This document shows positions 2,933 to 63,055 of a stretch of DNA of 64,000 bases, in pieces (position 1 is the stretch's first letter; every line of letters begins with the position of its first letter). The translations under genes and the position numbers were made by a program. Under the pieces are notes generated by a model. It was not told where the DNA came from. It saw only the letters and a program-made list of their open reading frames with translations, and made no database searches. The stretch is taken from assembly GCF_036321535.1 (NCBI RefSeq), contig NC_087444.1:68572001-68636000 (forward strand), read 5' to 3'. Origin of the DNA: Camelus dromedarius (taxonomy: Eukaryota).

Positions 2933-5276
<2,344 letters not shown>

Positions 5277-5310
5277 TTACTCCACAGCTCCTCACCGCGC
5301 GGCGCCGCAA

Positions 5311-5490
5311 CCGGAAAAGGAAAGCACAGAAGCCACCCCGTCTGCTTTTCAGGGTCTGCGCAGGCGCGTTGTGCGCAGCGTCGCGACAGGAAGGAGCTTT
5401 ACGGCTTGTGGGCGGAACTTTGGATTGGCGGCGGGAAGGTGGAGCCCAGGAGCGGAAGGGGCGTGACGTGGGCGTGGAGGGGGCGGGGCC
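5311..5490 (-). promoter_or_regulatory. RPS16 5'TOP initiator and CpG-island promoter
   Basis: The minus strand reads CTTTCCTTTTCCGG (oligopyrimidine start, 5324-5311). Upstream are ETS-like GCGGAAG (~5452), TGACGT (5464-5469) and a GC box GGGGCGGGG (~5480). Confidence 0.85.
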
Positions 5491-7323
5491 TGGAGAGTGT
5501 TGGGTAGGGCCCGAGAACGGTGACAACAAGCTGGTCTTCATATCCTTGGTCCTCATTGGTCACCTCCAGTTCTTATTTGCATTTGGGCTCTTTAATTATA
5601 TGCCTCCGCTCCCAATCCCAAGCGAGTCGCTCCTTTTTCTAAAGATCCAGTCTTACCGTCTCATCAACGGCAATCTTCCTCCCCAAATCCTCCTCCATCA
5701 GAATCATCCCTCCAGAACCCACAGCAAGAAATCTGGCAGAATTCAGAATATCCCTACCTCCTAGAGCCCACCTCTTCGAGTCTTCCCACAGAATCCTTTT
5801 TCACTTAGAGCCCCCTCCACCAGAATCTAGCTTTCACGAGAATTTCCTTACTTTTAGAGTCTCCGCCTCCCAGAATTCTTCTCTGGGAAGCCCACTCCCA
5901 AATCCCCCACCTCAGAGCCCTCACCCTAGACTCCCTCTTTCCTGAATCCCCCTTCACTCGGGGTCCTCCCCCCTATAATTTTCCCCAGAATCTTTCCTCA
6001 GGACCCACGGCCCCCAGAATCCTCCTCTTTCAGAATCTCCCTCTCCCCTCAATCCACTTTTCCCAGAACTGCTCCCCTAGAATCCCCTTGCAGAAAATCC
6101 TCATCCTTTTCAGAGCCCCCTCTCTCAAAATCTACCTTTCCCAAGAATTTTCTGCCCTTCAGTCTCCTCTCCCCAGAAAGTGTCTTCCCTGAAATTCGTC
6201 TCCCTACTAGAATCCCTCATTCCTTGGAAACCCTTCCTCTAAACCCCCCTTTTAAGGGTCCATATCCTAGGACCCCTCTTTCTCCAGAGTCCCCCAAATC
6301 ACCCTCCTCTCTAGGCCCCTCCCTACAGAATTCTCTATCCCCAGGAACCTCAGGATTGGGTAGCCCTCAAGCTCCCCGCCACTCAGGATGCTTCCTTCCC
6401 AGCCAAGAGCTTCCTCTCAGGGCTGCAGGGAGACCTGTTTGTCTGGCAGCACTGGGTCTGGGGTCCAAGGTTCAAAGAGGTGTATTGGTTCACCTATGCC
6501 TGGAGGGCGGAGACAGGGTGGAGATTGGTGGACAGGTCTGGGTCCAGAGGAGGATCCTCCAGCTCAGAGTCCAGCTCCAAAAGGGTGAGAGGGAAAGGGG
6601 CGAGGGGCAGGGGAGGGAGGAAGGTAGCATCCAGAGGCTGACCTAGAGGGACACACAGACAGATACCCAGCACAGGAGAGAGACAGGCACACATGGAGGA
6701 GAAGGCAAAGACAGGGCCAATGGAGAAGAGGAGAAAGAAGAGAGACACTGGGTCAGACAGAGATGGAGCCAGAAAACACAGGTGACCGAGATTCAGAGGC
6801 AGAGAGGCCAACCCTCAGAGAAAGAGAAGACAGACAGGTACAGGCAGGCACTAAGATTCCAAGACACTTGAGACAGAAATGGAAGTAGAAAGAGCAGAGA
6901 CTCCCAAATATGCACCTGCAGACACAGAGAAAGTGTAACACTGGCATTTTCCAATGAGAAGACAGGCCACAGAAGCACACACTCTCACACACTTTGTATT
7001 GCCTTATGGGCCTGTTTAGGGGGCAGAAGAAGCTTCTAAACTCACCAGTCTTTCCAGGCTGATCCTCACAGCCTTGCTAAGTCTGGTATCTTGGAGGGGG
7101 GAGAGGGTCTGGGAGCCCTCTGACCTTGGCCCTCGCTACTCTAGGGTCACCGTCTCCCCCAGCCTCCTGGAGTCAATTTCCTGCATATCTGTGGATTGAG
7201 TAGAGCTGGGAGGCAGTTCCCCTTACCCACTTCAGCCTTCCAACTTGCTCCCTCTCTCTGTACCTCTTGTTTCCAGGACCCCGGGCCAGAACCAGAGAAA
7301 ATCTGGGGGTGGACAGTGTGCCC

Positions 7324-8552
7324 ATGTGGCCTCTCCGAACCATCCTCCTGCTGGTGCCACCCTTGGGGAGCCTGGGACCACCCCTCTGCCCACGGGAGTG
7401 TTTCTACTTCCTCATTGCCATCATGAAGATGCTGGTGAGGAGGGAGGGAAGAGCCAGCAGACAGGGGCAGGCTAGTTGAGGGAGTGGGATGGGGGGCACA
7501 TTCAAGAAAGGGTCAGGCTCTCCCCTTCCAAGGTCTGATTTTCCTCCCTACCCCACAATTGAAGGGGAACAAAAATGATGGCACTCTCTACACCCTAGAT
7601 GATCTCTCGGTGAGTATTTCATTAGCTCCTTACTGAAGTTGAAAGTTTAGGAAGAATCCACTAGGCTTAGAACATGTACATGTTGAGAACAGGATGCAGG
7701 CGGGCTGATGTTCTGACTGGCTGGTCCCTGACCCACCCCTAGCCTTGACAGATATAATTTATTCACTGCTGTCTCCAACACCTCAAACAGTGACTGGCAC
7801 ATAATAACAACAAAGGGTGATGATGATTACAGCTATACTGAAATAGTGCTCACTCTGTGCCATGTTCTGGTCTAAATGCTTTAAGTGTATTAGCTTACTG
7901 ACTCTTTACACTGACCCTATGAGGTAAATAGAACCGTCATGTATGGATGTGAAGGTTGTACACTGCACAAGGGTCCCACATCTACAAGGACAGTATTCTC
8001 ATCATTTCCATCACATCTATACTTGTCAACTTCTGGCAGATGGCAATAAAGTACCTTGTTTTAACAAAATCAGCACTTAGAAGTGTTTTAAGGAAGGAGT
8101 GTCTTTTTCTAACTCACACAGGAGCACTAGAGTCAGACTTGAAGGTGGGCATTATTAAGAGCTCCAATTTATAGATGGGGAAACTGATGCCCAGAGAGGC
8201 AAAGAGGCATGATCCAGGTCACAAGTCAGAAATTGTGAGGGTGAGGATTTGGGATCAGTCCCTTGCCCAAACATACCAGATCACTCTGTCCCCGTAGGTG
8301 TGTCCTGCTGAGACTCTAGGCTGCTTCTGGCTGGAGCTGTCTGTGACTGGGTTTGAAGAGGGCCCATCCGTGGGGACTGCCATGTTCCGGCTACAGCGCC
8401 TACTGGATGCCCTGGGGTCCCGGCTGTGGGTAACTGGCCAGGGCCCCTGTCCACCCTGTGAAGGACACCTGCAGAGACCTGTCCCTCTCTTTTTGGCCAA
8501 ACTCTTGGAGTTATTACAGGGGGCTTGTGCTCGGCATCTGCCCTCAGCATGA
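7324..8552 (+). CDS. IL15L: Interleukin-15-like cytokine (IL-2/IL-15/IL-15L family), intact, 3 coding exons, 136 aa
   Basis: Exons 7324-7434 (37 codons, hydrophobic signal-peptide-like start), 7565-7609 (GNKNDGTLYTLDDLS) and 8298-8552 (VCPAETLGCFWLELSVTGFEE...CPPCE...FLAKLLELLQGACARHLPSA*). All are phase 0 and GT-AG. Motifs align with IL-15 DATLYT / CKVTAMKCFLLELQVISLE / CKECE / FLQSFVHIVQ. Its position next to SUPT5H fits the reported IL-15L locus. Confidence 0.93.
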
Positions 8553-9029
8553 GACTGGGAGGACACAGACTCTCTGGTACTCCTGGAGAGGCTGAGTGGA
8601 GAGATGGAGAGGAGACCTGGTCTCCAGCCCCAGCTCCCAACCTAAGCCTTCTCCTCCTAGGCCAGAGGACCCCACCTGGAGCCTCAGGAACCAGGAGAAG
8701 AGGAGAGAAGGAGGAAAAAAAAAAGGGTGAGACCTGAAGCCTGAAGTCTCCAACCTACTGGGGCAGAGGGTTGGATAAATTGCCCCCACCTGCCCTCATT
8801 GTTCTCCGTCTTTTTCAGATACTCCCTCCTCTCTCCTCTTCCAGGAAGGGACAAAGCATTGCACATGTGTCTCTAACCTCATCCCCATCCCTTGAGGACA
8901 GGGAGATTCTTGTGGCTCACATCCCTGGCTGCAAATAATCACCACTTGGAGAATGTTTAAGTAATGCTGATGGCCAAGCCCCAGTCCAGATAATTTGATA
9001 ATTGGTCTCTGGTGGATCCTGAATATCTA

Positions 9030-9430
9030 TATTTTTAAAGTCAACTTTATTGGGGAATAATTTACATACAGTAAAAGGCACCCATTTGAAGTGTACATTT
9101 CAACAAATTCTGACAAATGTATCATACTCTACCACATTTACATCACCTCAAAGCATCCCTTTATGCCTTTTCCCAGTCAATGTCCATCTCTAGTCCTAGA
9201 CACCCACTAATCTGCTTTTTGCTTGTATAGATTAGTTTTGCCTGTTCTAGAATTTCATATGAATGGAATATGCTAGTGTCTAGCTTCTTTCACTCAGCTA
9301 ATGTTTTTGAGATTCATTCATGTGTGTATCAATAGTTTGTTACTATTCCATCACATGTATGTACTGCAACTTGTTTATTCCTTCTCCTCATGATGGACAT
9401 TGGGTTGTGTCCAGTTTGAGACTATTATGC
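9030..9430 (-). mobile_element. Old L1 3'-end fragment (L1M class) flanked by MER5-like pieces
   Basis: ttttgcctgttctagaatttcatatgaatggaat...gatggacattgggttgtgtccagttt is typical antisense L1 3'UTR. Confidence 0.6.
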
Positions 9431-10339
9431 ATCTCTCTCTCTTATCTTCTCAAATATTCTGATGTGCTGCCAGGTTGAGAGTTGAGAACCACTGCTATGC
9501 CAAAGAAGAGATCTCTGTGGAGAGAAAATGACGGTTCCCTCTCTTTCCTGGAGTAAATGCCTTCCTGCAGAAGTGTCAAGAGGCATTTTTATAGGGAATC
9601 CTGTTTTAAACAGCTGCTATTTAAAGGAACAAAGCTTGTAGAAGAGGAAACATTTCTATAGAGTACCAACCCCTTCCCTAATCTGTTTTGGCTTCAGTTT
9701 AGGGGTGGAAGGGAGAGTGTGTGCTTATGGAGAGATGAAGCTGTGGTGTATACTCATTCCCTGGTAGATGTGTTGTGAGCCTGCTGCCAGCCCAACAGCA
9801 CCACATTCCTCTGTAACTAACTAGGTGTCTTATTAAATTTCTTTAAATTGAACCCAGGTGTGTCAGTGCTTATGTGGGAAATTTTAGCAATGTGTTCTAA
9901 AAGCTTCTGATTTATTTTCCTCCATCAGGTTAATTTTCCATATTTCTCTCTCATGCCTGGTTCCCTTTGCCACCTCTCTGACAAATAATCACTAGTAAAC
10001 TCACATTTAAATCAATTTAGGGAGATTGCAATGGAAAACAAGGGTCACCCAAACTTGGGAGTAGTCTTGGGTCTACCACTTACCAATTACAGAGTTTCTT
10101 TTTCTGAATTTCGGGTTTCTCGTCTGCAGAACGGGGGTACCTACCTCCTACCAATGTGTCAGAGGGGCTGTAAGATAAAGTCTGAATTATTTGATTAGTG
10201 AAATGGACTAAATTCAAGCGCGAGTTTCTGGCTGGAAAAATCCGGTCCCAGAGTATTAAAACACTTTGCCCTTTTTCCGCATCTTCGACCCTCTCAAGAT
10301 GTCGACTCCACCCTCTACTTTAAGACAATTCTGCCACTC

Positions 10340-10497
10340 TCAAGATGGCGCCCTGACCGTGCATCCCGGGTACAAGCCCTTTAAGTCTCGCGATAGGCGG
10401 GGCTAATGGGGTAGGCTCTCGCGAGAGGTCACGTCAGTCCCAGCCAGGCGTCGTGTGAACAGCAGCTGGTACCGAAGGTGGAAGTGGAACCGGAGCG
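10340..10497 (+). promoter_or_regulatory. SUPT5H CpG-island promoter and non-coding exon 1
   Basis: YY1-like AAGATGGCG (10342-10350), TCTCGCGATA (10386-10395), palindrome TCTCGCGAGA (10417-10426), CACGTCA (10430-10436), and donor GCG|GTGAGG at 10497/10498. Confidence 0.75.
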
Positions 10498-10758
10498 GTG
10501 AGGGGGTGGGTTGGCCGCCGAGGTGACAGACCCGGGGGTCGCGGAGGGCCAAGGAGGTGTAGAGGCCGGCTTCGGGGATTCGGGAGGTATAGCAGGTGGC
10601 ATAGGAGGTCTCCTTTTGGGTTCACAGTTGCCATAACGAGGCTGCCGGAAGTGCGCCAAGTTTTTTTTTTTTTCTTTTCTCCTGGGGAACCGGAGGGGAA
10701 ACTAAGCCTCAGACGTTGGGGACGCGCTGAGGCCGCCGTCTTTTCTTGCGAGCAGAAG

Positions 10759-35110
<24,352 letters not shown>

Positions 35111-48324: not shown

Positions 48325-56026
<7,702 letters not shown>

Positions 56027-57495: not shown

Positions 57496-59597
57496 GAAGA
57501 TGGGAAGTTGTGTTATGCTCATGCTGGTTTTTTTTGATCAATGGCTGCTGAAGGCAGGCAGTTGCATCCCATGGATTCCCCCTTTGATGTACTTCCTGGT
57601 GTCAGTGATGTGTCACCTGTGGCAGAGTGTTGGCACCATCACCGTACACATCCATGAGTCATTCCAGGAATAGTACCGACTGGATGATCAGAGAGTGATG
57701 ACTGGAGTTCTCTGATTCACCACTGTAAGGGAAGAGTCCTGCACCCAAGTCAGCAGGCCCTTTAAAGTGCAGGCTGTGATCCATGGCTTTGCCTCACGGG
57801 ATGCTGCAGGCTGAGCCCAAGGTAGCAGCTGCTGGGGCAAGAAAAACCATCTCAGATGGTTAGCACTCACAGGGAAGGAAAGTTATTCTGGTCCATATCC
57901 CTTCCCTTTAAAGGTGAAAGGAAGCAGAGCCCCAGAGGACTAAAGTGGAAGGCATTCCCCAAATGGTCGTTTTTTTTTTTCTCTTTTGGCAGGGCTTTTA
58001 ATCTTTCAGGCCTAGACTTACTGCATTTACCACAATGACAGTAGTGAATAAAGTACCCTAAGTGATCACTCCAAAAAAGCAAAAAAAAAAAAAAAAAAAA
58101 AAAAAAAGACAAAAAATCAAAATGCCTCCAAATGCACAGAAATCAGACAGCCTTGGTTCAGATTTTGGTTCTGCTACTTACTCGGCCAAGTCACATCACC
58201 TCTCTGTGCCTTAATTTCCTTATCTGTAAAATGAGACTAGTAAAAGAACCTGCTTCAGAAGGTTATGAGTATTAGCTAAATTAATAAATACAAAGCATTT
58301 TATAACAGAGTCTGGCATATATTAGATGCTCACTAAATGTTTGTTCTCAATATTATGCTAAAAGAGGAAAGCCTATTTCAAGTTCATTTCACAGAGAAAC
58401 CAACTGAAGCCTAGAGAAGAGTAGAGACTTGCCTAGCATCACACAGGACATTCAGGGTCTTTCTTGATCCTCCTGGTATTTGGGACTCAGGCCCAAGATT
58501 TAGCACAGGAAGGTCTCTCAGGGGTCAGGAAGCACAGTGGGCCATGACCTCTCCTCTGCTCGAAATCTTCCATGAATCCAAATAGGTCTGGATCTGACCT
58601 AATAGCATGGGACCAATGTCAATATCCTGGTTTTGATAATGTACTGTGGTTACATAAGATGTTGTTATTGGGGAAAGCTGGGTGAAAGATACAAAAGAAT
58701 TTTCTATACTCTTCCCCAACTTCTTGCGAGTGTGAAAACTGTTTCAAAATAAAAAGATAAATATTTATTCAGTGCCTACTGTGTGCCAGGCCTTGTTTTA
58801 GGAGCTGGGGATTTAGCAGTGAACCAGACAGGTTCCCACCCTGGAGGAACTCACAGTGTGATAGAGTCCTTGGCAGAGGAGTTCTGTGTCAGGACCCTGA
58901 AGCCTGACAGCTTGTCTGAATCCTGGCTTTACTACAGCTTATCAGCTGTAGGCATATGTGTAGCACTTAGCACTGTATAAATGTAAAATCTGTTACTGTT
59001 GCTCATTATGATTTTTCTGCAGATCTCTCGGTTGTCCCCTCTTCTAAGAAGCCCTCCCTGATTGCCCCAGACTGGTTCTAGCACCTCTTCTGGGATCCCA
59101 CAGGCCCATGTGCTTCCTCACCACATCTCTGACCCCCGTGCCTGTGCTTCCTCCACCCTCACCCTGACCTCACTGGGCTGTCATTGTTTGGCGATTGGTA
59201 TATCTCCCGCACTGGACAGGGAGCCTGATCACTGGATGTGGGCTTGCCTGATCACTGCTCTGGCCCCAGAATCACCCAGCACAGGACTGAGCACATAGCA
59301 GGCACTCAGTAATCAGATATTGAACGCATGAATGTTAAGGACACTGGCAGTCTGTGTGTTCCTTACCCTGGAGGTGAGGATTAAGGGAATGGGAATTATC
59401 AGGCGGGATCTGGCGGTCCCGGCCCCATCCTGGCCCAAAGCAGTAGAACCTGCGCGCTGAATGGAACCCCATGTAACAGCGCTCCATTGTGGTCGCCTCC
59501 CATTTTAGAACCCTGCGCGGTTAAGGCTCTCCCTGCCCGAGGCAGGAGGGCCTGGCGGGATCCCAACCTGGGTATCTGGGGTCCGCCCCTGACCCCC

Positions 59598-62485
59598 ATG
59601 AACAACCAGGAGCGGGCCCCAGGCCCCACCCCGGCCCGGACCTTGCCTTCGGTCCGGGCCTCAGTTCCGGCCCGGGGTTCGACCGTGGTCAGAAACTCCA
59701 TCCCGGTCCGGACTCCGACTCTGGTCCGGACCTTGGCCCCGATCCGGACCCCAACTCCAGTCCGGACTCCAACTCCCGTCCGGACGCCAACTCTGGTCCG
59801 TACCCCGACCCCTGTCCGGACCCCGACTCCGGTTCGGATCCCAACACCGGTCTGGACCGCAACTCCAGTCCGTTCACCGACTCCGGTCAGGATCCCGACT
59901 CCGGCTGGGATCCCAACCCCGACCCCGTCTCGGATCCTGGTCCCTGCCTTGGAACCCCTCCCAAACTCCGGCCTATCTTCGGATCCGCCCCCAGAACCTG
60001 ATCCCCAGCTCACTTTGTCGCCTGATCAGGATCCTGCGCCGACCCTGAGGGTGAAGCCCATCCCATCGTTCACCAATGGCTTCGGTCCCACCCAAGAGCC
60101 CTTTCCTGCCCTTACTCCATTGGCCACCGATTTCCTGGGGTCCACCCTCGAGTCCAGCCCGAGGGCAGACCCATCGGCCACCAAGTTGATAGATTCCACT
60201 TCTGGACATAGCCTGGCGACGCCCATCCTTGGGACCATCCCGTTGGCCGTCACCTTACCGTTTTCTGCCAACACATTCGCCTCCACCAGCGAGAACATCC
60301 AAGTGGACAACAAGATCATGATTCGCGTGGTCTACTGGTCAGGGGCTGTCCCCACCCACAGCGGCTTCCTCCCCCGGGGCAAGGGCTGGAGGGGGTAGGC
60401 GCCACCTGCCGTTCTCTTTGGAACTAGCGATCTCTGGGTTCACTCGTTCACACTCCTGTGAACAGAGCCACCTGCTTTCCTCCCCTGTAGAGCAGAGGGC
60501 CCTGAGGGAGGACAAGGGGTGGGAGAACTTCAGAGGCTGGGTGTTCAGGGACAGTCTTTCTCAGGAGGTGGCGCTTAGGTTGCTACTTCTCAGTGAGGAG
60601 CCACTAAGAAGAGTGGAGAAGGGGGATCAGGTCGCCCCTGTGATGGGGGTGGGGGCGTGGGGGGTGGAGGGAGGGGGGAAAAGGGGAGGGGAACAGCCAG
60701 TGCAAAGGCCGAAGGAAGCTGGCTTTAGTCTGCATTCCTGGTCTCAGAGCTGAATCTTTGTGTCCCCACAACAGTAACAGCAGTGACCTTCCTTTGCTCT
60801 TACTGAGACCCAGGGCTGGATGTGGCCGGGGGAGGGGCATTGTCTTCTCTCTAATCCCTGTGCCTCTCTCCTGCTCTAGAAGGTTCCGGTTTTCTGTCTC
60901 TCCAACTCACAGCCGTTTTCCCTTTCCCTATGTGGTGTGTCTCTTTCCCCATCTCCCCACCCCACCCCCTTTCTCTGCCCATTTCCTCCTTTAAAATTTT
61001 TTTTTAAATTTTTTCCCTTCCAGTTTATTGAGATACAATTGACATACAACACTGTATATTTGAGGGGGATAATTAGGTTTATTTGTTTTAATGGAGGTAC
61101 TGGAGATTGAACCCAGGACCTCATGCATGCTAAGCATGCGCTCTACCACTGAGCTACACCGTCCTCCCCATCTCCTCCTTTCTATCTCTCTGACTCTGTG
61201 GATTCATTCATTGTTTTGTTTCTTCAACAACCATTTATTAAGTAAATCCCTGCTTATTCACTGCTGTGTCTCTGATGCTGGCCTTGTTCTCAGTATCAGA
61301 GACATAGCAGTGAATGAGACAGATCCCTGTGGCATGGACATTCTGGTGTGGAGGGGCAGGGATGGACAATAAACATGACAAATGGCAAATTATTTAGGAT
61401 CTTAGAAGGCAATCAGTGCTATGGATCAAAGGCATCTTGGGAGGGGTGTCACAGTTTTAGCTGGGGTAGTCAGGAAGTTTTCACTGAGGAGGTGATCTAT
61501 GAGCAAAGACTTGAAAGAGGGGAGAGGTGGAGCCTTGTGAATACCAAGGAAAGAGCATTCTGCATAGGGAATGGCCAGTGCAAAGGCCCTGGGGCAAAGC
61601 ATGCCTGGAACATTGGAAGAAGAGCTATGAAGTCCCTATGGCTGGACTAGAGTGGGCCGGGGTAGGGGGAAAGTGCGAGGAGATGGAGCAGAGAGGTGGT
61701 AGGGCCAGATCCTGTGGGGGCTTGTGGACCACAGGGAGGACTTTTTTTGCTGAGTGAGGTGGCGTCTTGGGAGGCTTTTGAGCAGGTGAGGGATGGGATT
61801 TGACTTAGGTGTTCACAGTGTCCCTCTGGTTGGGGAGATACTGAAGCAGTGTCTTCCCTCCATCTCTCTCTGCCTCCCTCCTCTTGCCCTTGACGTCCAG
61901 TGGCCTCTGAAGCTATGGCCTTAGGGTGAGTAGTTTTAACTTTGGAGGTGGGGGAGTGTGAACCATGAGGTCTGGAAGGAATTCCTATTTCCCTTCCCTC
62001 AAGACCTGTGACCCCATGACCCTTTGGTCCTCTGATCCTGTGACCACACGGTCCCATCTCCTCCCCACAGTACATCCTACTGAAAAAGAGCCTGGAGCAG
62101 CAATTTCCAAATTGTCTACTCTTTGTGAGTGCACTGGTGGCCCAGGGGAATGGGTTGGGTATTCAGGGCTGCAAGACCCCCAAAGGGGCTTTGAGGGGAG
62201 CTCTTAGCCTCTGCCAACGCCTAATATTCCCTCCCCAGGAGGAGGACGTATCTGCCCAGGCTACAGGGGAGTTTGAAGTGTTTGTGGACGGGAAACTGGT
62301 CCATTCAAAGAAGGTGATTCTAAACAAGGGTCCTGGACAAGAAGGGAGGGTGGTGTTCCAAGGCGTGGGAGACAGACACATTTGTGCTCTTTCCCCTCCG
62401 TGCCCAGAAAGGTGATGGCTTCGTGGATGAGACCAAGCTGCGGAAAATTGTGAGCCTTATCAATGAGGAGATCAAGAAAAGGTAG
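59598..62485 (+). CDS. SELENOV: Selenoprotein V (Rdx/thioredoxin-like fold, in-frame Sec UGA), 5 coding exons, 323 aa
   Basis: Exons: 59598-60337, 61901-61925, 62071-62124, 62239-62313, 62408-62485, totalling 972 nt. The Pro/Thr-rich repeat N-terminus is followed by IRVVYC-G-L-U-SYGLRY with TGA at 61908-61910, then [23 protein letters not shown] (SELENOW/V family). Confidence 0.96.
59706..59921 (+). repeat. Coding minisatellite, 12 x 18 bp (VRTPTP-type units) in SELENOV exon 1
   Basis: Units such as gtccggactccaactccc and gtccggaccccgactccg recur at an exact 18-nt period from 59706 to 59921. Confidence 0.92.
61059..61169 (-). mobile_element. Vic-1-type SINE in SELENOV intron 1
   Basis: Reverse-strand head GGAGATTGAACCCAGGACC...CTACCACTGAGCTACACC. 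Confidence 0.82.
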
Positions 62486-62924: not shown

Positions 62925-63055
62925 NNNNNNNNNNNNNNNNNNNNNNNNNNNNNNNNNNNNNNNNNNNNNNNNNNNNNNNNNNNNNNNNNNNNNNNNNNNN
63001 NNNNNNNNNNNNNNNNNNNNNNNNNNNNNNNNNNNNNNNNNNNNNNNNNNNNNNN
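62925..63055. other. Assembly gap (131 N) downstream of the SELENOV stop codon
   Basis: Run of N. Confidence 0.99.

Follow-up and report, generated by a model that had tools for sequence, protein, structure and literature searches.

The window that we analysed is a stretch of 64,000 nucleotides from the genome of Camelus dromedarius (GCA_036321535.1, CM070318.1), and the original prediction of a camelid-like genome was thus correct. Three coding exons of 111, 45 and 255 nt lie on its plus strand at positions 7324-7434, 7565-7609 and 8298-8552. They are flanked upstream by the coding region of RPS16 (2933-5338, minus strand, in divergent orientation), recognised from RPS16 peptide motifs in minus-strand frames, and downstream by that of SUPT5H (10519-35107, plus strand, the same strand as the three exons), recognised from peptide motifs, MSDSEDS onward, in plus-strand frames. 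At the identical NCBI locus, the neighbour on the RPS16 side was called with the Pfam domain Ribosomal_S9 and the one on the SUPT5H side with the Spt5_N, NGN and KOW domains, which confirmed the proposed location between RPS16 and SUPT5H. The placement and the strand are those published for the cytokine gene IL-15L, which is located from PLEKHG2/RPS16 to SUPT5H on the SUPT5H strand (PMC3894449); PLEKHG2 lies beyond the window.

Direct reading and scripted splicing both reproduced the three phase-0 exons and the 136-aa reading frame that had been predicted: the joined 411 nt encode 136 aa without an internal stop, and every junction is in phase 0. Exon 1 (7324-7434) starts with the ATG at 7324, ends at the donor CTG/gtgagg and encodes an N-terminus resembling a signal peptide, together with helix A; C22 and C26, the latter specific to camel, are in this exon. 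Intron 1 (7435-7564, plus strand, 130 nt, gt...aag) ends with the acceptor ...caattgaag/GGG, with an adenine at position -3. Exon 2 (7565-7609, 45 nt, GNKNDGTLYTLDDLS), whose donor is TCG/gtgagt, holds D42 and Y46, the equivalents of D22 and Y26 of IL-15. Intron 2 (7610-8297, plus strand, 688 nt, gtgagt...tag) leads to the acceptor ccccgtag/GTG of exon "3/4" (8298-8552, 255 nt including the TGA stop), which encodes helices B, C and D with C54, C61, C103, C106, C129, E65, E72, E107 and Q126. A fused exon 3/4 is a hallmark of tetrapod IL-15L (PMC3894449). The 111/45/255 plan recurs in hippo, rabbit, lynx and two bats, and that of sheep is 126/45/255; for the lynx, the wrong first exon of the gene model was replaced by the canonical exon found at the lynx locus.

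Comparison of the exon-2 acceptors showed that AAG, instead of the usual YAG, is present in camel alone, with tag or cag in all other species checked. This acceptor was missing from the description given by the original prediction. AAG acceptors are usable in splicing. A TAG is found inside exon 2 at 7596-7598, where other mammals have CAG, and it could conceivably be a putative competing acceptor. The start codon lies in a weak Kozak context (gtgcccATGt, with a C at -3 and a T at +4). The plus-strand segment before it (7277-7323), which follows an acceptor-like ttccag at 7270-7276, may belong to the first coding exon as its 5'-UTR, judging from the sequence only. This segment has no upstream ATG, and its in-frame codon at 7303-7305 is CTG. 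At the equivalent site, an additional start ATG is present in pig and sheep, as it is in cattle and horse (Dijkstra et al. 2013, Fig. S2, PMC3894449).

The spliced protein does not differ by a single letter from the RefSeq entry XP_064346052.1, the dromedary "uncharacterized protein LOC135322174", and the same protein is present without a name in the Bactrian camel (XP_010945534.1). The supposition that the gene was hidden and probably unannotated did not survive this comparison, since RefSeq lists the identical protein for two Camelus species and an alpaca copy is given in Fig. S2 of PMC3894449. Over the full length, identity was 92% to pig IL-15L, 86% to hippo, 82% to sheep and 82% to the rabbit IL-15L precursor, with orthologue E-values as low as 1e-65. 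Exon 3 used as a query found 25 IL-15L relatives, the best at an E-value of 4e-50, the E-values for the IL-15Ls compared above ranging from 8e-44 to 9e-40. A search of 1.84 billion proteins gave 40 matches, the full-length ones of which form an IL-15L-like family when aligned to the query, and a metagenome scan returned two host fragments only, both non-camelid.

The score against the Pfam IL15 model (PF02372), at 22.1 bits (E=1.8e-4), was under the gathering threshold of 28.5, and another dromedary ab initio gene model splices differently, as might be expected of a chance ORF or a gene-prediction artefact without any relation to cytokines. However, pig, sheep and rabbit IL-15L also fell under the cut-off (23 to 26 bits) and, because these bona fide IL-15Ls miss it too, we conclude that the Pfam IL15 model under-reaches the IL-15L subfamily. 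The RefSeq identity, the orthologue matches, the synteny, the exon plan and the fold described below agree with each other and rule out a chance ORF; the probability that we leave to an artefact is negligible. The homology that had been proposed is borne out, and the gene is almost certainly the dromedary orthologue of IL-15L, the third member of the IL-2/IL-15 family.

We modelled the protein with AF2 from a 27-sequence alignment, an earlier model from 12 close orthologues (pLDDT 49.5) having been discarded. The model (pLDDT 76.4, pTM 0.70) has helices at residues 24-37, 55-73, 75-95 and 114-131, and it predicts an up-up-down-down four-helix bundle with two short strands that is closest to IL-15. 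A Foldseek search of the PDB with this model placed IL-15 chains at all of ranks 1 to 9 (TM-scores normalised to the target, TMt, 0.75-0.82), and IL-21, IL-4 and IL-2 came next. The family profile compared with PDB sequences likewise found IL-15 (E=1e-13) ahead of IL-21. The expected four-helix architecture was therefore recovered as an IL-15-type model, for the bundle only.

An HMMER alignment to human IL-15 showed that the C54-x6-C61 and C103-x-x-C106 spacings are present. The six family cysteines C22, C54, C61, C103, C106 and C129, invariant or nearly so in the family, are all found in camel, where the substitution P26C brings in a seventh one, unpaired and four residues away from C22. In the same alignment, D42, Y46, E65, E72, E107 and Q126 are opposite D22, Y26, E46, E53, E89 and Q108 of IL-15, so the cysteine spacing, IL-15Ralpha-contact and Q108 equivalents of the original prediction hold. 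By this alignment, the IL-15Ralpha-contact equivalents D42, Y46, E65, E72 and E107 are kept. An ungapped extension of the alignment placed Y28 opposite D8 of IL-15; the helix-A contact to IL-2Rbeta indeed has no aspartate, as had been noticed, and this is common to the other mammalian IL-15Ls aligned rather than a feature of the camel, Y28 being kept in all placental IL-15Ls aligned. The positions aligned to D8, D61 and N65 of IL-15 are Y, T and R, respectively.

Following the idea of an IL-15Ralpha competitor in the original prediction, which is speculative, a ligand with these aligned residues might bind IL-15Ralpha without engaging IL-2Rbeta/gamma-c and would then be a competitor or decoy for IL-15 trans-presentation. 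Bovine IL-15L binds IL-15Ralpha (PMC3894449; PMC7658486), and no signalling activity was found for it in cattle, nor has any been found so far for any mammalian IL-15L (PMC7658486). However, these features are not camel-specific because they are common to the other placental IL-15Ls aligned, and Q126, at the position of the gamma-c contact, hardly varies (it is kept in at least 90% of family sequences). Furthermore, the trout IL-15L-IL-15Ralpha complex signals and drives type 2 cytokine expression (PMC7658486). We therefore consider a re-purposing of the camel protein as a competitor or decoy very unlikely.

We compared the camel gene with that of alpaca (vicPac1 scaffold 27695), the closest relative with a published sequence. 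This sequence comes from a 2x assembly; it was read from the PDF table of Fig. S2 (PMC3894449), where the start of exon 1 is blank for alpaca, pig and dolphin, and it was reconstructed by introducing 11 codon changes into the camel CDS. The reading frame is open in three camelids, namely dromedary and Bactrian camel, with an identical protein, and alpaca, where the open part runs from codon 24 to the TGA stop also used in camel. With no stop or frameshift in any of them, the ORF can be called intact, as predicted. Alpaca shares L110 and the loss of P26 with camel; it differs at eight amino acid positions (26, 36, 48, 63, 69, 81, 102 and 111) and three synonymous sites, and it keeps the TAG acceptor of exon 2 and P48, unlike camel. 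Over 339 nt, the nucleotide differences between the two were 10 nonsynonymous and 3 synonymous.

Relative to other mammalian IL-15Ls, the camel residues are R5, S16, C26, L48, W63, T69, M81 and L110. Two of the changes, I69T in helix B and P48L, are at positions that are hydrophobic or proline in nearly all IL-15Ls. Species-specific replacements at otherwise invariant sites numbered 6 in camel, 5 in sheep, 7 in rabbit and 6 in a bat, the genes of the last three being regarded as working. An exceptional decay of the camel gene, considered on account of its replacements, was rejected since the load is just as high in sheep, rabbit, a bat and a hedgehog-like species. A change in selection, or positive selection, instead of decay is another reading of the substitutions: C26, L48, W63, T69 and L110 (R26, Q63, F69, H102 and R111 in alpaca) would retune the protein, for example through a Cys26 disulfide dimer or an altered affinity for IL-15Ralpha, and make it a camelid-specific modulator of IL-15 trans-presentation. 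We regard this as very unlikely.

In the branch codon model, omega was 1.4 for the terminal branches of camel and alpaca (approximate 95% interval 0.44-6), the background value being 0.38. Its test against a single ratio gave p=0.029 (0.052 when one OCR-suspect codon was reverted), and it did not differ from 1. The omega of the camel branch alone was 0.94 (interval 0.21-7.5), which did not differ from the background, and that of the stem-camelid branch was 0.28. Frameshifts or stops with a dN/dS near 1 had been proposed as signs against a functional gene; a ratio near 1 was found on the camel and alpaca branches, a result that is fragile with 2x alpaca data, and no camelid stop or frameshift was found.

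The omega of the terminal branches is compatible with a recent loss of protein-level constraint in camelids, in which an intact gene would be drifting to a unitary pseudogene and any transcripts would be non-functional or non-coding. The excess of nonsynonymous differences between camel and alpaca, the AAG acceptor, the weak start context with a CTG in place of the upstream in-frame ATG, the unpaired C26 and the I69T substitution in helix B point the same way, as does the repeated independent loss of IL-15L in eutherians, including primates and rodents (PMC3894449). Moreover, the intact frame alone does not exclude such a loss because a 408-nt frame survives about 20 My of neutrality with, by a rough estimate, a one-in-three chance. 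On the other hand, the omega of 1.4 depends on a 2x alpaca assembly whose sequence was taken from a PDF table, omega on the camel branch by itself is not distinguishable from the background, and AAG acceptors can be used. In addition, there are zero stops or frameshifts across the three camelid species, and the replacement load is like that of sheep and rabbit, with coding transcripts reported in the 2013 paper (PMC3894449).

RNA-labelled sequencing runs with the IL-15L locus also contained intron words, and there was no exon-specific enrichment beyond about 2-fold, which would also fit a loss of constraint. In one RNA run, the segment 8298-8800 was represented by about 24 of its 46 words and the segment 7200-8297 by about 33 of its 117, of which the exons could account for an estimated 15 at most. 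Because intron sequence is present, this signal is ambiguous between pre-mRNA, DNA carry-over and intron retention. Three Logan contigs were left out, being intron-retaining or genomic and not spliced. No clean mature-mRNA signal was seen in the word shares of the RNA-labelled runs and RNA-derived contigs holding the IL-15L locus, and a spliced transcript encoding 136 aa was found in one other species and not in camel.

Retained function is favoured by the intact frame in camelids, the stem omega of 0.28, the conserved contact equivalents and the ordinary replacement load, and it is disfavoured by the omega of 1.4, the AAG acceptor, the weak Kozak context, the upstream CTG, C26, I69T and P48L. 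On balance, we lean slightly towards a camel IL-15L that still encodes a used protein, and a loss of constraint is a serious contender to which we give somewhat less than an even chance. Most likely, camel IL-15L is still protein-coding and under weak constraint. If expressed, it would be, as the homology with bovine IL-15L suggests, a secreted short-chain cytokine of low abundance that IL-15Ralpha stabilises and presents.

IL-15L is a poorly understood cytokine that was lost in human and mouse and kept in livestock. Our result on the camel gene is incremental rather than surprising: it corrects the annotation of LOC135322174 in dromedary and of the unnamed product in Bactrian camel to IL-15L, and it places Tylopoda among the lineages whose IL-15L frame is open. 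If constraint did become close to neutral once the camel and llama lineages had split, with the splice site weakened as well, camelids would possibly present IL-15L caught early in loss, and such a case could help to decide whether eutherian IL-15L still acts.

Comparison with other mammalian IL-15Ls (cattle NP_001288142, rabbit NP_001288189, pig, sheep and horse; PMC3894449) showed the same locus, three coding exons including the fused exon 3/4, 136 aa and 82-92% identity. The six cysteines, the D/Y/E/E/E IL-15Ralpha motif and the helix-D glutamine are as in camel, and the Kozak context of the consensus start codon is equally poor. Camel differs from them by an AAG rather than a YAG acceptor at exon 2 and by a CTG in place of the upstream in-frame ATG of pig, sheep, cattle and horse. 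The IL-15L pseudogene of human and rodents (IL-15L-psi) is found at the same locus upstream of SUPT5H, in keeping with the repeated loss of this gene by eutherian lineages; frameshifts, stops or deletions disrupt the gene in human and mouse, whereas the camel copy has none. IL-15 (PDB 2Z3Q, 4GS7 and 2PSM) is a paralogue at a different locus with about 21-25% identity to camel IL-15L, and it has the same fold as the predicted model (TMt 0.75-0.82, rmsd 1.7-3.4 Å). Both of its disulfide positions are matched in camel IL-15L, as are, by alignment, its contact residues for the IL-15Ralpha sushi domain, whereas its helix A and C contacts to IL-2Rbeta (D8, D61 and N65) are not conserved in IL-15L. 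Unlike IL-15, IL-15L has an extra C22-C129 pair, to which camel adds C26.

Reading and splicing of the window reproduced the three-exon, phase-0 frame of 136 codons that the original prediction had placed at 7277-8552. The start ATG is located at 7324 on the forward strand; exon 1 (7324-7434, 111 nt) is followed by gtgagg and exon 2 (7565-7609, 45 nt) by gtgagt, while exon 3 (8298-8552, 255 nt) has a normal tag acceptor and a TGA at its end. The start codon has a C at -3 and a T at +4, and positions 7303-7305 are CTG where the interleukin-15-like (IL-15L) genes of pig and sheep carry an in-frame upstream ATG (MG.. extension); this ATG is also present in cattle and horse and is said to give a better Kozak context (Fig. 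S2 of PMC3894449). The acceptor of exon 2 is AAG, with ccccacaattgaag running into the GGG of the exon and the bases before the exon at 7563-7564. A pyrimidine-rich CTCTCTACACCCTAG lies inside exon 2 at 7596-7598, 34 bases downstream of this acceptor; it could compete as an acceptor, and its use would leave an exon of 11 nt and shift the frame. The ab initio model of another dromedary assembly (KAB1274286.1) continues past the donor of exon 1, leaves out exon 2 and yields a truncated protein of 98 aa, so gene predictors disagree at this locus. Exon 3 is overlapped on the reverse strand (8255-8640) by a pair of ORFs, 103 and 119 aa long, and nothing indicated that they are more than by-products of a GC-rich coding exon.

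A search with exon 3 alone returned 25 proteins, the best of which (E=4e-50) was a RefSeq camel protein that matches the spliced window protein exactly. The others included the pig 'Interleukin 15-like protein' (92% identity over exon 3), the rabbit 'interleukin 15-like precursor' (85%) and proteins of sheep, hippo, cats, mouse lemur, bats and platypus. Full-length alignment of the camel protein showed identities of 92% with pig, 86% with hippo and 82% with both sheep and rabbit, and this comparison, proposed together with the IL-15L identification, upheld it. The gene had also been described as hidden and probably unannotated; this did not stand, since camel models are already in RefSeq without a name. 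It is held by two entries, XP_064346052.1, titled 'uncharacterized protein LOC135322174 [Camelus dromedarius]', and XP_010945534.1, titled 'unnamed protein product [Camelus bactrianus]'. Two camel species thus encode the same protein, from a gene that is annotated but nameless in each. The finding is the correct identification of a nameless member of a known family; the family and its locus are already published, as are its occurrence in Cetartiodactyla and an alpaca IL-15L sequence, and none of the papers in the library searched mentioned IL-15L together with camels.

The Pfam IL15 match of the camel protein (E=1.8e-4) was under the gathering score, as were those of pig, sheep and rabbit IL-15L. 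Against the PDB, a profile built from 27 IL-15L sequences gave IL-15 structures at E=1e-13, followed by IL-21 at 3e-8. The AlphaFold2 model made from the 27-sequence alignment (pLDDT 76.4, pTM 0.70) has the anticipated four helices (24-37, 55-73, 75-95 and 114-131) and two short strands, and its best nine Foldseek matches in the PDB were IL-15 chains, with target-normalised TM-scores of 0.75-0.82 and rmsd values as low as 1.7 A. HMMER alignment to human IL-15 placed D42, Y46, E65, E72 and E107 opposite D22, Y26, E46, E53 and E89, C54/C61 opposite C35/C42, C103/C106 opposite C85/C88, and Q126 opposite Q108, bearing out the IL-15Ralpha-contact, cysteine and glutamine residues that had been predicted. 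The predicted lack of a helix-A aspartate was seen on ungapped extension of this alignment, where Y28 is opposite the IL-2Rbeta contact D8; a tyrosine is found at this position in the other aligned placental IL-15Ls, so the missing aspartate is not specific to camels. Camel IL-15L is an intact gene for a protein of the IL-15 fold that keeps the IL-15Ralpha-contact motif.

The camel lineage carries replacements at sites invariant in seven other species (W5R, G16S, P26C, P48L, I69T and V81M), as well as R63W and P110L, the latter common to alpaca. P26C creates a seventh cysteine, near C22, and the threonine at position 69 stands where 26/26 other aligned IL-15L sequences have I, V, L or M. With 6 unique replacements at sites that otherwise do not vary, the camel does not stand out from sheep (5), rabbit (7), one bat (6) or a hedgehog-like transcript (7). 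Codons 24-136 of alpaca IL-15L (vicPac1), taken from its row in Fig. S2 of PMC3894449, form an open frame with the same stop as in camel, and the Bactrian protein is identical; the stops or frameshifts that could have contradicted the original prediction were thus not seen in these camelids. Over these codons, camel and alpaca differ at 11, with 10 nonsynonymous and 3 synonymous nucleotide differences.

Our own GY94/F3x4 branch model, on nine taxa and the accepted species tree, gave an omega of 0.40 for all branches (one ratio) and 0.28 for the camelid stem. On the camel and alpaca terminal branches omega was 1.40 with a background of 0.375 (LRT p=0.029 vs one ratio, rising to 0.052 when one alpaca codon with a possible OCR G/C confusion was reverted; p=0.59 vs omega=1; approximate 95% profile-likelihood interval 0.44-6), and on the camel branch alone it was 0.94 (p=0.26 vs one ratio; interval 0.21-7.5). 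In the proposed dN/dS check, the stem value was thus low and the crown value compatible with 1; relaxed constraint in crown camelids is suggested but not established. The crown omega would fit a camel gene drifting towards a pseudogene, a plausible if somewhat doubtful reading, against which stands a replacement count on par with those of sheep, rabbit, bat and the hedgehog-like transcript. By a rough estimate, a 408-nt frame evolving neutrally for about 20 My would stay intact in about 1 of 3 cases, so the intact frame alone cannot decide whether selection persists. We lean slightly towards a camel gene that still encodes a used protein.

In RNA-labelled sequencing runs, the shares of sequence words present were 0.52-0.56 of 8298-8800 and 0.33-0.35 of 7200-8800 for two runs (X4 and X5), and nearly the whole locus was present in two others (X1 and X2). 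The 5' part held more words than the exons were estimated to supply, so intron sequence is also present, and the word shares fit low-level unspliced RNA or DNA carry-over equally well as real mRNA. AATAAA was absent within 1.2 kb of the stop, and the first ATTAAA after it is at 9832. A Logan contig of a hedgehog-like species (SRR17481189, 167-577) holds a fully spliced 136-aa IL-15L transcript. Contigs of another species (SRR34021268/263/270) hold exon 3 with intron sequence ahead of it and therefore represent unspliced RNA or DNA. Mammalian IL-15L exon 3 was also found in metagenome contigs Ga0126362_10023372 (86% identity to camel) and ERZ1033891 NODE-8208 (74%), presumably host DNA in the samples. 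Low, ubiquitous expression of IL-15L has been reported for cattle and rabbit, along with numerous non-coding splice forms and, in human, an IL-15L-psi-SUPT5H hybrid cDNA (PMC3894449).

The 7.2-kb IL-15L locus of NCBI contig CM070318.1 (Camelus dromedarius GCA_036321535.1) is base-for-base identical to 4324-11552, and in that record the opposite-strand neighbour is a Ribosomal_S9 protein and the same-strand neighbour a 1087-aa protein with Spt5 NGN and KOW domains. Our own frame scan located the RPS16 coding sequence at 2933-5338 on the reverse strand and, on the forward strand, the SUPT5H coding region, which opens with an ATG at 10519 and has its stop at 35107. Runs of N occupy 23862-24001 (140 bases) and 62925-63055 (131 bases); the former adjoins a SUPT5H coding exon whose translation opens with X residues. 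Downstream of SUPT5H, a long open frame with EGF/hEGF-repeat domain matches (54508-55356, forward strand) is consistent with an exon of DLL3, which we take to follow SUPT5H in the human 19q13.2 gene order. A 303-aa open frame at 59487-60395 on the same strand encodes a short tandem peptide repeat, and its only match, a weak one to Pfam DUF963, looks like low complexity.

Judging from bovine and trout work, camel IL-15L would be poorly secreted alone, and would be stabilised by, and bound to, IL-15Ralpha (PMC3894449; PMC7658486). Trout IL-15L induces IL-4/IL-13-type responses, and mammalian IL-15L has had no activity detected so far (PMC3894449; PMC7658486); a re-purposed ligand or decoy in camel has a small residual probability. 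The published position of IL-15L is between PLEKHG2 and SUPT5H (PMC3894449); the gene directly upstream of it in the window is RPS16. Genes spliced from the genomic loci of hippo, sheep, rabbit, lynx and two bats have exons of 45 and 255 nt, as in camel, and an exon 1 of 111 nt except in sheep, where the upstream ATG extends it to 126 nt. The exon-2 acceptor is tag or cag in all six, as it is in about 20 mammals tabulated in Fig. S2 of PMC3894449, whereas aag is found in camel only.
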